Shown here piece by piece: positions 11,978 to 37,947 of a stretch of 64,000 bases of DNA. Positions within the stretch are counted from its first letter, which is position 1. Each line of letters starts with the position of its first letter. The notes beneath the pieces were generated by a model, which was given only the letters and a program-made list of their open reading frames with translations, had not been told where the DNA came from and made no database searches. Position numbers and translations under genes: made by a program. The DNA comes from Blastocystis sp. Blastoise (taxonomy: Eukaryota; Protista; Bigyra: Opalinata), in assembly GCA_039096225.1 (NCBI GenBank), contig JBBPEB010000007.1:1116001-1180000 (forward strand), read 5' to 3'.

Positions 11978-12019
11978 GGGAATATAAAGTCTTTTAAAAA
12001 TAATTTTTTGTATATCTCT

Positions 12020-15000
12020 ATGAATTTATTATTTCCATCAATATCATATGATGGAGTCATACGAGACTCATCGAAACGATTAATCCATGCTGGAAAAGCG
12101 TTCATTCCTATGAGAATAGCTCAATCATTACACTTAAATATAGGCCAATCCATATATATTGAGGCTATTTCCAAAGAGGATGATACAAAGAAATGGATCT
12201 TTCTCGTTTCGTCGTTTTGTCAGACGTCTTCTTATTCAAATCACATAGAATTTTATCCATGTAGCATTCTGTCAGGTGATGAACTCATTCAAGATAATAC
12301 TCGTATATTTATTTATTGTTCTCGTTTTTTTTTATTCTTTTATAGAAGTAAACATTCGTATATTACCTGAAGATCAGCATCCGATGTCTATAACATTACT
12401 GTGTATTAGTATTAAATTGTCAGAACAAAATCCACTCATTAATCAACAATTAGTATCTCGATTGATATCTGTTCCTCTTTATAATGGTAAAAAAGTATTT
12501 TTAAATGGAGTATATTTTGACATCATTAGGTATATATATATTTATATTCAATATATAGTATCCTAATTAATTTTTTTATTCAATAGTACTTCTCCAAAAA
12601 GTAATATTATTGTTTGTCAACCATCAACTGTAATATCTATTGAAGATTCACACATAATTGATATGTCTTCTATTAATAATAATAATAATAATAATAATAA
12701 TAATAATAATAATAATAATAATAATAATAATAATAATAATAATAATATATCATCCTCAGAAATGATATCATCAGATATAATCCACGCAATTCAATCTCTA
12801 TATATAAACCCTTCCTCTTTATCTATATTACCAGGATTATCTTCAGTATTTCAAACTATATTTCAATGTGTATTGACTCCTGTATTATGTAAATCTATGG
12901 AAATCAACTTTATTACTCCTTATAAAGGTGTGTTAGTATCAGGACCTCCAAGCACAGGAAAAACAACTATTGTATATATAGAATTATTTAGTACGATATT
13001 TGTTTTTATTATTATTATATATATATAATCATTATATCATTTTCATTATCATTCTTAATAGTATCATTATGCTATTAATTCCATATTATTATATAGATTA
13101 ATCAAACATTAGAAATAATCTCAAAGTATATACATATTAACACTAGCGTTCTAGTTCCCTCTGATTTGACTTCTTATTATATTAATGATGGTATTCAAAG
13201 ATTAACATGTATATATATTATATTATTGTTATTATTAGCTATCATATTATTATAATAGTATAGTATATAATAGTATATAATAGTATATACTATAATATAT
13301 AGAATACACTATATTAATATACACTATAATACACTATATATAGCTACATTTACACAGGCGTCTCATTATGTAGAAGAGCATCCATATTCTATGGCTATTG
13401 TTATTATTGACCAAATTGATGTTATTTGTCAAAAGAGAACCGATATCAATACGGAGGGAACACAATTAGTTTCTCAATTATTAACATTGATGGATGGTGT
13501 CAAAGCATCTGACAGAGTACTCGTCATTGGTGTTTCAAATAAACCTCATTCATTGGATCCCGCGCTTCGAAGACCGGGAAGATTTGATAAAGAAATTTAT
13601 GTGAATCCTCCAATACAGAAAGATCGAGAAAATATACTTTATTATTATTTAGAGAAAGAAAAAGAGTATATAAAGCGATCCATATATGAATATATACCGA
13701 TATTTGCAGAAAGAACACGTGGGTATGTTGGAGGTGACTTGGAGTTACTTTGGAGTTATTTTATTCAACGATATTCGATATATTTATTGGAACAACAAAA
13801 TAATAATCAAATTTTAGTTTCTAAAAGTTCAAAAGATGTTCTTCTTCTTCTATTCGAAGAATGTCTGTTAGAAATCCCTCCCAGTCTCATGAGGGACGAA
13901 GAGAAACTGGATTCAATTACGTGGGCAGATATTGGCGGCCTAAAGGATGTGAAGTTACAATTACAAAAAGTATTCTTTCTTATTCTATCTATTTTATTTA
14001 TATATAGCTTCTATATTATTTTATTCTTATTAGTATAATATATATAGGTTATTGAATGGCCAATCAAGTATGCGAAACAGTATTCCCATTTTGGTATCCA
14101 TCCGTCACGTGGTGTTCTTATGTATGGTCCTCCAGGGTGTGCGAAAACCACATTAGCACGTGCTGTGGCAACTGAAGCACATGCATCTTTTTGGACGTTA
14201 AATGGAGCACAAATCTTTTCTCCTTTTGTTGGTGAAGCAGAAGTATATATTTTTATTGATATTAATCTCTATATTATATATATATATATATAGTTTACAG
14301 TACGTTCAATATTCCAGAAAGCTCGAAGTTCTCTCCCCGCGGTTATTTTCTTTGATGAAATTGATTCGTTAGTTTGTAAACGATCAAAAAATAGTGGCCA
14401 AGATGATCCTGTTCAAGTATATATATATACATATATTGTTTCTTATTTGGTATATGTTTAAATTAAGTATATTATTTAATTATTATTAAATTATTCTTTG
14501 CTTGTAGTGGTTTATATATATTAAAATATTCATATTTCTTATAGTCACGTGTAATGACAACATTTTTAACAGAAATGGATGGTGTAGAAGTATGTGACGG
14601 TATACTTGTCATTGGAGCAACCAATAGGCCTGATGTTATTGATGACGCGCTCTTACGACCTGGACGATTTGATGAACTTATTTATATATATATATATATA
14701 TATATATATATATATATATTAATATGTTTCTCTTTATATTATTATATAATTGATTTCTATATATATAGTTATATACCTCCTCCTGATTATGATGCTAGAA
14801 TTGATATTCTCAAAGTATTCTATATATATATATATATATATATATATATATATATATATATATAATAGGTAAAAACAAAGAATAATAAATTATCAGACGA
14901 TATCGATTTCGCTACTATTGCTAAACTCTGTGAGAATTATTCAGGTATATAGATATATATATATATTAATCATAATTATATCTAACTCTTCTATATATAT

Positions 15001-15285
15001 ATATAAATCATAATTATATCTAATTCTTCTATATATAAATATATATTAATCATAATTATATCTAATTCTTCTATATATATATATATATATAATCCTATTC
15101 TTCATATAGGTTCAGATATGTCTTCATTATGCAGAGAGGCTGGTATGATTGCTCTAAGGGAAGACATAACCAATCAAATAGTCACTCAAGCACATTTCTT
15201 AAAAGCAATAACGAACACTCGAAGCTCAATTACACATGAATCACTTGATTTCTATAAAGATTTCATGAAACAAAAGAAACTATAA
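12020..15285 (+). CDS. CDC48/AFG2-family double AAA ATPase (AFG2B/SPATA5L1-like)
   Basis: D1 has [14 protein letters not shown] and [13 protein letters not shown]2 has [15 protein letters not shown] (AFG2B-type), IFFDEID and ATNRPD...LLRPGRFD. About 10 exons; stop at 15283-15285. Confidence 0.88.
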
Positions 15286-15835
15286 TTATAAATATATAAG
15301 TCATAACAAATAATAAAATATTTTTTGTTTGCTTGAATAATAATATGGACAATTGAACATTTTAGTTTAGTTCATTGATAATTATATAGAGACATTGCGT
15401 AAAGTATGTTTCTATTCATGATAATGTTTTAATAGAAGCGTTTATATATTTATAATTATTGTATTTTTATAAACTATCAATTATTTCTTATGAACTAATT
15501 TGGAAACAAAAAACAAACCTTAATTCATTTTAATATTTATGTTATTTAGAATGAAAAAAGTATAAAATAATATATATATATATACAATATACAGATATAG
15601 AATAATAGAATAATGAAAAGAAAAAAGAAAAAGACAAATAAGAAATAAAGAATAATTAATAGATATAGAATAATCAATAGATATAGAATGGATTCAAAAT
15701 AATAGAAACATCAACATAAATACTTTAATAAAAGAAATCTATTCTTTTCAAAAAGAATATAGCTTAAATATATAAATATGTATATTATAGAAGAGTTTAT
15801 TTTTAAATATAAAGGCTATATGGAACATATATATA

Positions 15836-17117
15836 TTACTTTTCAAGATTTCTCAATTCAGCTTCTAATTCTTTCAGTTTTTGTTGTTTTCTTGATTCAA
15901 AATCATACATAATCAATTGTAAATGTTCAGTCAATTTCGTTTTTCTTTCCCCTAATTCTTGTACTAATTTATCTGCTTCTTTAAACTCTTTCTGTTTCTC
16001 TAAATATACCAAATTAGCAGAATTCAATTGACTATATAGAAATAGTAATATAATATATAGAATATATATAATATATAATATATATAATATATATAATATA
16101 AAATAATATAAAATAATATAAAATATATAATATATAATATAAAATAATATAAAATAATATAAAATAATATAAAATAATATAAAATAATATATAATATATA
16201 ATATAAAATATATTGAATATAGAATATATATAATATATAATATATAATATATAATATATAATATATAATATATAATATATAATATATAATATATAATATA
16301 TACCGATCGCAAGTATCAATCTTATCTCTTAATATTCCTATTTCTTTCGTAAGAGGAACATCAAGCGCATTTAACTCTCCATTTATCTTCTCAATTAATT
16401 CCTTCTGACGAATTAACTTCTTACCACGAGCTTCTAACTCTAATTTCATTGCATGCTGCTTCTTCTCAACCTATATATTTATATATATTTATTATTATTA
16501 TTTATATTACTATTTATATTATTATATTTATTATTATTCATATTATTATATTTACTATTATCATTTAAATAAGAATTATCAATAGAAACACTAACAATAA
16601 TTAAATAATAATAATAATAATAATAATATATTAACATACATCTGCCTTAACAACATTTGGATCAACAATAGAATCTAAAATATTTGGTTGCATCTATATA
16701 TATATAAATGATATAAATATTTAATTATAAAAATATATGATGAATTTTCAAATCTACATACAATTGGCTCTTTTGGTTTTTCAGGTGTTGTTTCTTTGAC
16801 TTCTACTGTAGTATTCACAGGATGATCTGGAATAGAATTGACAATTTCACCTAATTGACTAATCTTGTTAGCTTCTTCCTTTGATTCTTGTGCAGCAGCA
16901 GGGTTTACAGGTCCAGTATACTATTCATTTATAAATAAGCACTATGATTTAGAAAAATAAACAACTTACAACCATTGGTTTAAAAAAAGATTCATCGTTA
17001 GGTTGAACGGTGGTTGTCTATATATTTTGATAATAATGAGTCATATATAGATTATCATACACCATAAGCAAGTGCTAAATCATCCAATGTAATTGTTTTT
17101 TTGGCAGGAGCACTCAT
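15836..17117 (-). CDS. Coiled-coil protein, RAB6-interacting golgin (GORAB)-like
   Basis: Six exons join in frame. The C-terminal coiled coil (LDVPLTKEIGILRDKIDTCDRQL...KQKEFKEA...LTEHLQLIMYDFESRKQQKLKEL) resembles the GORAB family. Confidence 0.65.
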
Positions 17118-36834: not shown

Positions 36835-36907
36835 GACTCCGTAGTGCAGTGGCAAACACGCTCGCCTGACACGCGAGAGATCCCGAGTTCAATCCTCGGC
36901 GGAGTCA
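36835..36907 (+). tRNA. tRNA-Val (GAC)
   Basis: GACTCCG/CGGAGTC acceptor stem with A73, anticodon arm CTCGC-CTGACAC-GCGAG (GAC at 36868-36870), GTTCAATC T-loop and T6 terminator at 36908-36913. Confidence 0.92.
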
Positions 36908-37411
36908 TTTTTTGAAGTTTTGTTTATACATTTTTTTTTGATATTTTCTTTTTAGATATAATTTTTAAACAATATGATTAACAATACAATTCTTTTTATA
37001 TTTTAAAAATATAAGCTTCACTGAATAAAAGTGATTATGATTCAAAAGAAAAAGAAAATTAAAAAAAAAAAAAAAATATATAGAAATGAAAGTGTACAAA
37101 AGATGAATTGTAAAAAAAAAAATAGGTATATAAAAAATCAAAAGATCAAAAGAATAAATAAGTGTATAAATTAAGAAAAAAATTAGATCAAAAGAATCAA
37201 AAATATATATAACTATAAGAGTGAATTATGATAAAAAAAATCTATAATACACATCATATATGATGTAGAAAAATAAAAGAATACATAGAATTCAAAAGAC
37301 AGAATATATAAACAAAATAGATAAAAACAAAAGGATACAAATTAAATAATTAAATAATATATATATATAACATCTACGATAAACATAATTTTTAAAAATT
37401 TCAAGTTACTT

Positions 37412-37890
37412 TTAATTTGCTTTGTTACTTGCAAGTGCACTTTGAGAAGGAATAATAGCATTTAAACTATTTCCTGGAATATTAATATCCCATGAACGTT
37501 CTATTTATATAAATAATATATATATTTTATTAAATAAAAGAAAAAACAAGAAATCAAAGTGAAAGAAGAAGAAAAATAAAGTTAAATACCTAAGTAACAT
37601 AGAATGTCATCGGGTTCAACAGACTGTGCTTTACGTTGCTTAGCGATACGGCAAGACATTTCAGCAACATCATCAACAAAATCTTTAGCCATTTCAAGAA
37701 TTAACTAAGAGAAGTAAGATAAAATAGATAAAGGCAACTAGCTTAATATAATACATTTTCTACATCAGGAGTTAATTCAATCGAATTATCGAATTGAGAA
37801 ATGTATTCCCTGAGTTGAGTTTTTTCAATCTAGATAGATGCATAACGAGTTTATATCGACACTACATACTGTTGAATAATTATCAGTCAT
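37412..37890 (-). CDS. TAF12: TFIID/SAGA subunit TAF12 (histone fold)
   Basis: Four exons give IEKTQLREYISQFD...DVENLILEMAKDFVDDVAEMSCRIAKQRKAQSVEPDDILCYLERSWDINIPG, which matches the TAF12 fold. Not in the ORF track. Confidence 0.9.
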
Positions 37891-37947
37891 GATATTTGAA
37901 AGACGTCAATAAAAAACAAAATGTTCCATACATAGAGATGGGCAAAA

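Follow-up and report, generated by a model that had tools for sequence, protein, structure and literature searches.

The genome of the tortoise-gut protist Blastocystis sp. Blastoise harbors a hAT transposon family whose copies often lie directly upstream of host genes, always with the same end toward the gene. Two copies of an autonomous element occur in a 64,000-nt stretch (contig JBBPEB010000007.1, positions 1,116,001 to 1,180,000; hereafter the window), each with its left end 42 nt upstream of a start codon. Of 15 independent insertions of the family and its close relatives across the genome, eight have their left end 30-96 nt in front of a start codon, and none has its right end in such a place. 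The bias in position and orientation is real at this sample size. With moderate confidence, the window is read as the joint outcome of independent insertions of two young copies in the promoters of TAF12 and of an AAA-ATPase gene, of the family-wide left-end bias at 30-96 nt, and of a later inversion of the intervening DNA.

The alignment of the two window copies shows a single difference, 14 nt in the length of a (TA)n run. The elements, the transposase gene of one of them and the spacers to the host genes are:

9051-11977, minus strand: hAT copy 1, 2927 bp; right end at 9051, left end and transposase start at 11977
37933-40873, plus strand: hAT copy 2, 2941 bp; left end at 37933, right end at 40873
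38099-40356, plus strand: transposase gene of copy 2, with introns, one of which contains a (TA)n(TTA)n microsatellite
11978-12019, plus strand: 42-nt spacer from the left end of copy 1 to the AAA-ATPase ATG, including a T6 run
37891-37932, minus strand: 42-nt spacer from the left end of copy 2 to the TAF12 ATG, with a T6 run on the sense strand of the gene

An initial annotation of the window had placed both copies exactly 42 nt from a host ATG, in the same relative orientation. Coordinates and arithmetic are correct, the first usable ATGs being those at 12020 and 37890. In both copies the end bearing the GTAGCTAC repeats and the transposase start faces the gene. A different true start codon would have undone the observation; both starts are upheld by open reading frame (ORF) logic, alignments and splicing, the last being predicted for 37890.

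The element belongs to the hAT superfamily, as target-site duplications, terminal repeats and dimerisation domain all fit. TAGAGATGGGCAA forms a 13-nt perfect terminal inverted repeat at both ends of all 12 core copies in the genome, and an 8-bp target-site duplication, the length expected of hAT elements, is perfect in 10/10 core copies outside the window. The Pfam profile Dimer_Tnp_hAT (PF05699) matches within 38671-40356 (E=4.3e-7, 30.1 bits against a cut-off of 21.4). A C-terminal motif of the transposase matches Hermes in PDB weakly (E=0.002), the likeness being limited to that motif. Exon 1 of the transposase contains a CxxC...HxxxH zinc-finger motif, seen by eye only. The four full-length copies measure 2835, 2925, 2927 and 2941 bp and vary solely in the (TA)n(TTA)n microsatellite of the transposase intron, which occupies 10985-11153 in copy 1.

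The census of insertions was based on DNA and pattern searches of the whole genome (33,340,088 bases, 34 contigs, about 24% G+C). The core copies comprise the four identical full-length elements and eight non-autonomous, non-coding copies of at least 1.44 kb, two of which (N4 and N5) represent one insertion duplicated along with its flanks. A subfamily of 83% identity (three copies with one common flank) and three diverged copies were added as close relatives, which results in 15 independent insertions. The eight promoter-proximal ones are given below with the distance from left end to start codon, the gene, and the support for its start or identity. F1 and F2 are the window copies.

N6, 30 nt: PHP-domain gene; Pfam profile position 1 at residue 15
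N3, 31 nt: secreted protein; signal peptide and intron, by eye
F1, 42 nt: TAF12; Pfam match on exon 3
F2, 42 nt: AAA ATPase; ORF logic, PDB alignment and RNA
N2, 55 nt: acyltransferase-like ORF of 433 amino acids; identical to a public gene model (NCBI KAK8807221.1)
F4, 59 nt: ORF of 337 amino acids, from a family of at least 119 members; ORF logic only
D2, 80 nt: SRP54; Pfam SRP54_N from residue 6
N8, 96 nt: SLC26 sulfate permease; Pfam matches on downstream exons

In one further insertion (N1) the start codon is 184 nt from the left end; in the other six, the 200 nt beyond the left end are free of start codons. No plausible start codon was found within 200 nt of the right end in any of the 15 insertions; a candidate beside N3, at 45 nt, was not upheld. 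An ATG at 42 nt from N7 on contig 16 is no gene start, since gene 3' ends lie on both sides. Two of the insertions are in divergent intergenic regions, where the element is 55 or 59 nt from one ATG and the opposite gene is at least 514 nt (papain protease) or 962 nt (lyase) away. Intergenic regions of tortoise isolates have a median length of 645-719 bp (PMC12129017). Such a genome-wide survey had been named in the initial annotation as a check, broad distances and random orientation being the outcome that would refute its reading. Eight left ends and no right end at 30-96 nt from a start codon do not fit that outcome.

Two calculations place the bias beyond chance. In a mechanical control, an ATG-led ORF of at least 100 amino acids starting 25-60 nt outward was counted, with the background taken from 214 kb. 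The background is 0.76% of position/direction pairs, compared with 4/15 left ends and 0/15 right ends. For the left ends this gives p=4e-6, or 8e-4 with the background quadrupled. In the curated set, the distance to a downstream ATG is below 100 nt in 8/15 insertions, where 3-5% would be expected for a named end; the calculation used the published gene number and generous totals of intergenic DNA (p<=3e-7). The 8:0 split in orientation has p=0.008 by itself. Purifying selection would deplete promoters of insertions, so the enrichment beside start codons supports a promoter-proximal insertion preference. The non-coding, non-autonomous copies share the bias, and selection through transposase expression therefore cannot explain it.

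The flank of the left end is distinctive in sequence. A run of at least six T occurs within 35 nt outward of the left end at 7/11 core sites, compared with 6.2% in the background (p about 1e-6), while a run of at least six A occurs in 0/11 of the same flanks. Read outward, T exceeds A in this flank at 11/11 sites (mean skew +0.23), and the flank of the right end shows no such skew. Among likely gene starts that have no transposon beside them, 12-22% show a T6 run and none an A6 run, and the transposon-flanked promoters have a T run in 6/8. A polar oligo-dT run on the sense strand thus marks the promoters of a minority of genes, and transposon-flanked promoters are enriched for it. Poly(dA:dT) tracts exclude nucleosomes. 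The initial annotation had dismissed sequence preference as an explanation. This holds for the target octamer, for which no motif exists, but not for the left-end flank with its strong enrichment for the oligo-dT run.

Other target features were considered and rejected. Neither a common target octamer nor a hAT consensus was found among the core sites. The pattern nTnnnnAn is not followed, with T at position 2 in 4/11 sites and A at position 7 in 6/11; the agreement is weak at best, in a genome of 77% A+T. Targeting of tRNA genes was dropped, as such a gene is close to only one of the 15 sites (copy 1). A TTTTGTTTCTA-like motif near some sites is inconsistent in orientation and distance. As a separate observation, TTTTGTTTCTA(C)-like motifs are located at 9031-9042 in the window, just upstream of the F4 target site, in both N7 flanks, and also downstream of at least one stop codon. 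They resemble TGTTTGTT, the downstream gene element of human Blastocystis subtypes, which is not enriched in tortoise isolates (PMC12129017).

The two ends of the element differ in structure. The left end contains three GTAGCTAC palindromes and half-sites at element nt 16-82, and the right end has no GTAGCTAC repeats. In the window, the arrays are located as follows:

11896-11962: left-end GTAGCTAC array of copy 1
37948-38014: left-end GTAGCTAC array of copy 2, with three palindromes and half-sites

The array is kept in the autonomous and non-autonomous copies and in the 83%-identical relatives. Outside transposon copies, GTAGCTAC occurs three times in 214 kb, which is not clearly above chance and led to its rejection as a general host promoter motif. 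In Hermes, a quasi-palindrome (LE11-27) and a third repeat of the left end are bound by the BED domains of three protomers, and the right end is bound by none (PMC10368747). In the light of this left-end binding, the left-only GTAGCTAC array is most simply regarded as a putative transposase-binding site of an asymmetric transpososome. The left end has a further peculiarity: element nt 131-143 (window 38063-38075 and 11835-11847) is an inverted copy of the terminal repeat with two mismatches, TAAAGATGGACAA. With this copy, nt 1-143 of the left end resemble a miniature inverted-repeat element, and the non-autonomous copies part from the autonomous sequence at about nt 125.

The following sequence of events is proposed. 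Two copies of one autonomous hAT element would have entered the short promoters of TAF12 and of the ATPase gene in separate insertion events. The family would insert, or survive, 30-96 nt upstream of start codons with the left end toward the gene, this end carrying the putative transposase promoter and the GTAGCTAC repeats. As for Hermes and TcBuster, integration would occur in nucleosome-poor promoter DNA, in Blastocystis marked by a sense-strand oligo-dT run. An asymmetric transpososome would join the left end on the side of the T run, whereby the orientation relative to the gene would be fixed. Later recombination between the inverted identical copies would have inverted 26 kb, swapped the target duplications and kept the 42-nt spacings.

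An origin of the polarity at integration, as suggested by the flanking sequences and the likeness to Hermes, is quite possible. A narrower version is put forward only tentatively: polarity relative to promoters of RNA polymerase II (Pol II) would be fixed, and a transpososome bound by BED domains at the left end only would read polarity from either the oligo-dT tract of the sense strand or a factor bound to the promoter. A further function of the left end may be that of a portable divergent promoter.

Selection as the origin of the polarity is conceivable but doubtful. In this case, integration in open promoter DNA would be unpolar, and only insertions with the left end facing the gene would be kept. 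To make up for the promoter DNA displaced by the insertion, the left end would have to provide a compact, palindrome-based bidirectional promoter that adds no upstream AUG. The essential genes for TAF12, SRP54 and the AAA ATPase retain only 42, 80 and 42 nt of native upstream DNA, respectively, and the strain is viable and expresses the ATPase. The transposase ATG (element nt 167, window 38099) and the host ATG are at roughly equal distances from the GTAGCTAC array, which stands between them. In the outward direction, no ATG occurs in the terminal 89 nt of the left end, in contrast to the right end with an ATG at 22 nt from the tip. These features suit a selected promoter, but the same orientation was also found at genes that appear dispensable, namely the acyltransferase-like gene, the gene for the secreted protein and the member of the family of at least 119 genes. 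Moreover, the full-length copies are mutually identical, which leaves little time for weak selection, and the transposon end is without an RNA contig, contigs being weak evidence. The dispensable-looking flanking genes and the identity of the full-length copies lean weakly to integration.

The history of the window copies is recorded in their target-site duplications. In the orientation of the element, copy 1 reads ATATTCCC-[element]-TCCATACA and copy 2 reads TCCATACA-[element]-ATATTCCC. The octamers of the two sites are mutually unrelated, as had been noted initially, yet each of them is common to both copies:

9043-9050: site A octamer TCCATACA, at the right end of copy 1
37925-37932: twin of the site A octamer, at the left end of copy 2
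11978-11985: site B octamer ATATTCCC, at the left end of copy 1
40874-40881: twin of the site B octamer, at the right end of copy 2
11978-37932: putatively inverted segment, 26 kb between the two inverted copies

This reciprocal exchange is limited to the window pair; the other 10 core copies have matched perfect 8-bp duplications. The inverted copies together with the exchanged duplications indicate that a crossover within the copies inverted 11978-37932 and exchanged the inner flanks. Reverting the inversion yields two ordinary insertions with reconstructed empty sites. The first restored site is a 118-nt divergent spacer between tRNA-Asp and TAF12, the second an 83-nt tandem spacer between the stop codon of a RING-finger gene and the AAA-ATPase ATG. 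As both left ends face inward, the inversion keeps each gene 42 nt from a left end. On this sequence evidence, the 26-kb segment appears to have been inverted by recombination between the copies in a recent event. The outer neighbors are:

8894-8967, minus strand: tRNA-Asp, 84 nt from the right end of copy 1
40923-41851, minus strand: 3' part of the RING-finger gene, ending 49 nt from the right end of copy 2; Pfam RING match at 41504-41851

A flip of the 26-kb segment between identical repeats during assembly, with no biological inversion, is unlikely. Short reads would be unable to orient a segment between identical copies, but the assembly was produced by Flye from Nanopore reads, its N50 being 1.3 Mb (PMC12129017). 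Nanopore reads normally span a repeat of 2.9 kb, and the copies were resolved as distinct, their (TA)n lengths being different. The assembly, which corresponds to the Russian-tortoise isolate Rus-B, carries RNA-guided gene models (PMC12129017).

A small-sample accident or an artefact of gene-start calling, with a family that inserts anywhere in intergenic DNA, is very unlikely. There are only 15 insertions, several starts were read by eye, and the mechanical count of 4/15 left against 0/15 right ends is not significant by itself. Against the measured background, however, the mechanical and curated p values given above are both small, and one of the starts, that of the 433-amino-acid ORF, is the same as in a public gene model. 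Coincidence had been conceded in the initial annotation for its two cases. This applies to the exact tie, which is best attributed to chance, and not to the bias itself, which exceeds chance across the 15 insertions. Within 30-96 nt, a tie has a chance of about 1.5% for one named pair and about 35% for any pair among eight. Because the odds of any tie reach about 35% and no other copy stands at 42 nt, the match of 42 and 42 is probably a coincidence inside the range of 30-96 nt, with no fixed register.

A tether to the Pol II pre-initiation complex with a fixed 42-nt register and a fixed orientation would account for two copies at exactly 42 nt and for the uniform orientation of 8/8 promoter-proximal copies, but it is barely credible with six other promoter-proximal copies at 30, 31, 55, 59, 80 and 96 nt, a third 42-nt ATG (N7) that is no gene start and is flanked by gene 3' ends, and six or seven insertions away from any start codon; the distances refer to the ATG, so that a register relative to the transcription start could still hold. 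From the position- and orientation-specific targeting proposed initially, the bias near the ATG is thus retained, while the exact spacing and the rigid tether are given up for distances of 30-96 nt.

Several points weigh against the reading favored here, that is, promoter-proximal insertion with the left end toward the gene and a later inversion. The sample is small, and orientation alone at 8:0 reaches only p=0.008. One start is backed by an exact public protein match and four genes by Pfam; the other gene starts are readings of our own. The census covers a single hAT family with its close relatives. The polarity of the T run is confounded with that of the gene, and only N4 and D3, which are not at promoters, hint at an effect of the T run independent of genes. 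The nucleosome-poor nature of the targets is deduced from the oligo-dT run as a proxy, at 7/11 left ends. No Pfam BED match at E<=1 was obtained for the transposase N-terminus. Heterozygous insertions would weaken the arguments on selection, and the identity of the copies leaves some room for an assembly flip of the 26-kb segment. Target recognition by Hermes has been described as symmetric (nTnnnnAn), and we know of no orientation bias in hAT elements.

The gene starts beside the window copies were deduced exon by exon, the exons of TAF12 and the AAA ATPase being searched singly:

12020-12302, plus strand: AAA-ATPase exon 1, by ORF logic; GT..AG joint 12302>12346 in RNA contigs
37870-37890, minus strand: predicted TAF12 exon 1, 7 codons (21 nt), deduced from the sequence
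37830-37869, minus strand: predicted TAF12 intron 1, 40 nt, GT..AG
37755-37829 and 37588-37704, minus strand: TAF12 histone-fold exons, separated by an intron at 37705-37754

The ATG at 12020 is the first in-frame ATG past a stop codon at 11897-11899, which is inside the element. The gene encodes a CDC48/AFG2-family type II AAA ATPase. Its D1 segment aligns to residues 294-490 of p97, and the N-terminal length thereby fits a start at 12020. Same-strain RNA contigs with zero differences show that the gene is expressed and spliced, with a first intron at 12303-12345. The RNA data are assembled contigs from four runs and cannot show a transcription start. The most 5' contigs on the gene begin at 12062 and 12097. 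Among the contigs over the stretch 11160-15600, none covers 11160-12053, a part that includes the transposon end and the spacer, which is weak evidence either way. Chimeric transposon-host transcripts were considered on the same data, and the lack of a contig across 11160-12053 counts neither for nor against them. Spliced contigs of the same AAA-ATPase gene (12097-15236) with the same introns are also present in a poly(A) gut metatranscriptome of another study. They differ by a few percent, mostly at synonymous-looking positions, and indicate that a related strain was transcriptionally active in the animal gut sample.

TAF12 was identified by the Pfam profile TFIID_20kDa (PF03847), which matches 37588-37704 with 37.9 bits against a cut-off of 27 (profile positions 25-62). 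The exon at 37755-37829 is closed by a stop codon directly upstream. A spliced 21-nt exon starting at 37890 is therefore the only open solution.

The 337-amino-acid ORF beside F4 is a single exon at 658479-659489 of contig 16. It had no exact match in the protein collection and no Pfam match. Its family comprises at least 119 six-frame matches of 20-33% identity, mostly intact open frames of 350-500 amino acids.

Several copies of the family were multiplied with their surroundings. On contig 16, two copies of the 83%-identical subfamily face each other with their left ends 4.25 kb apart (about 41.4-51.5 kb); their outward flanks are identical over 1463 nt, as in a large inverted duplication. 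The third copy, with the same flank, is near 1148971 on contig 21, 5 kb from the contig end. These blocks on contigs 16 and 21 look like a duplicated subtelomeric block. On contig 31, two non-autonomous copies (505694-507134 and 539184-543262) are 33 kb apart and share the duplication CATAAAAG and the flanks. The pair is a segmental duplication carrying the element, and one copy later gained about 2.6 kb of inserted DNA. Eight loci of other hAT families were located by a protein search of the genome.

TRE5-A of Dictyostelium and Ty3 of yeast insert a short distance upstream of genes transcribed by RNA polymerase III, TRE5-A in a fixed orientation. Both are retroelements tethered to TFIIIB or TFIIIC. 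The Blastocystis family, in contrast, is a DNA transposon at Pol II genes, and its distances to the ATG are not fixed (30-96 nt). We know of no orientation-specific, promoter-proximal cut-and-paste transposon in eukaryotes, as far as an unsystematic view of the literature allows.

Closer relatives are found among the hAT elements. The Blastocystis element shares with Hermes from Musca domestica the 8-bp duplications, the hAT dimerisation domain and short terminal inverted repeats. A further likeness is that palindromic subterminal repeats follow the left terminal repeat on its inner side (PMC10368747). In yeast, Hermes is reported to insert in nucleosome-free DNA at gene 5' ends (Gangadharan 2010). 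The texts consulted on Hermes describe no orientation bias relative to genes, whereas the polarity of the Blastocystis family is uniform. Hermes and TcBuster both favor nucleosome-free regions and transcription start sites, and integration of both TcBuster and piggyBac is enriched near transcription start sites (PMC3499496). In human cells their enrichment is on the kilobase scale with no polarity reported, compared with tens of nt from the ATG and uniform polarity in Blastocystis. Promoter-proximal hAT insertion is already known; the uniform polarity within tens of nt of the start codon is the unusual part.

A precedent for the inversion is Galileo. Inversions caused by this element are reportedly recognised by exchanged target duplications. 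In Drosophila buzzatii, a chromosomal inversion bounded by two inverted copies of this one DNA transposon is described and ascribed to ectopic recombination between them (PMC4168063). Galileo belongs to the P-like superfamily and the Blastocystis element to hAT. The Blastocystis event also differs in its length of 26 kb, in its occurrence in a protist, and in having no standard arrangement for comparison.

The exchanged duplications would document a recent, transposon-mediated inversion of 26 kb in a protist regarded as largely clonal. To our knowledge, Blastocystis promoters are essentially undescribed, and the bias bears on them as well as on the element. If it arises at integration, the asymmetry of a Hermes-type transpososome would affect target choice, and the family would provide a naturally directional insertion tool. 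If it arises by selection, TAF12, SRP54 and the AFG2/CDC48-type ATPase would work with only 42-80 nt of native upstream DNA. Blastocystis core promoters would then be extremely compact, or the transposon end would supply promoter function.

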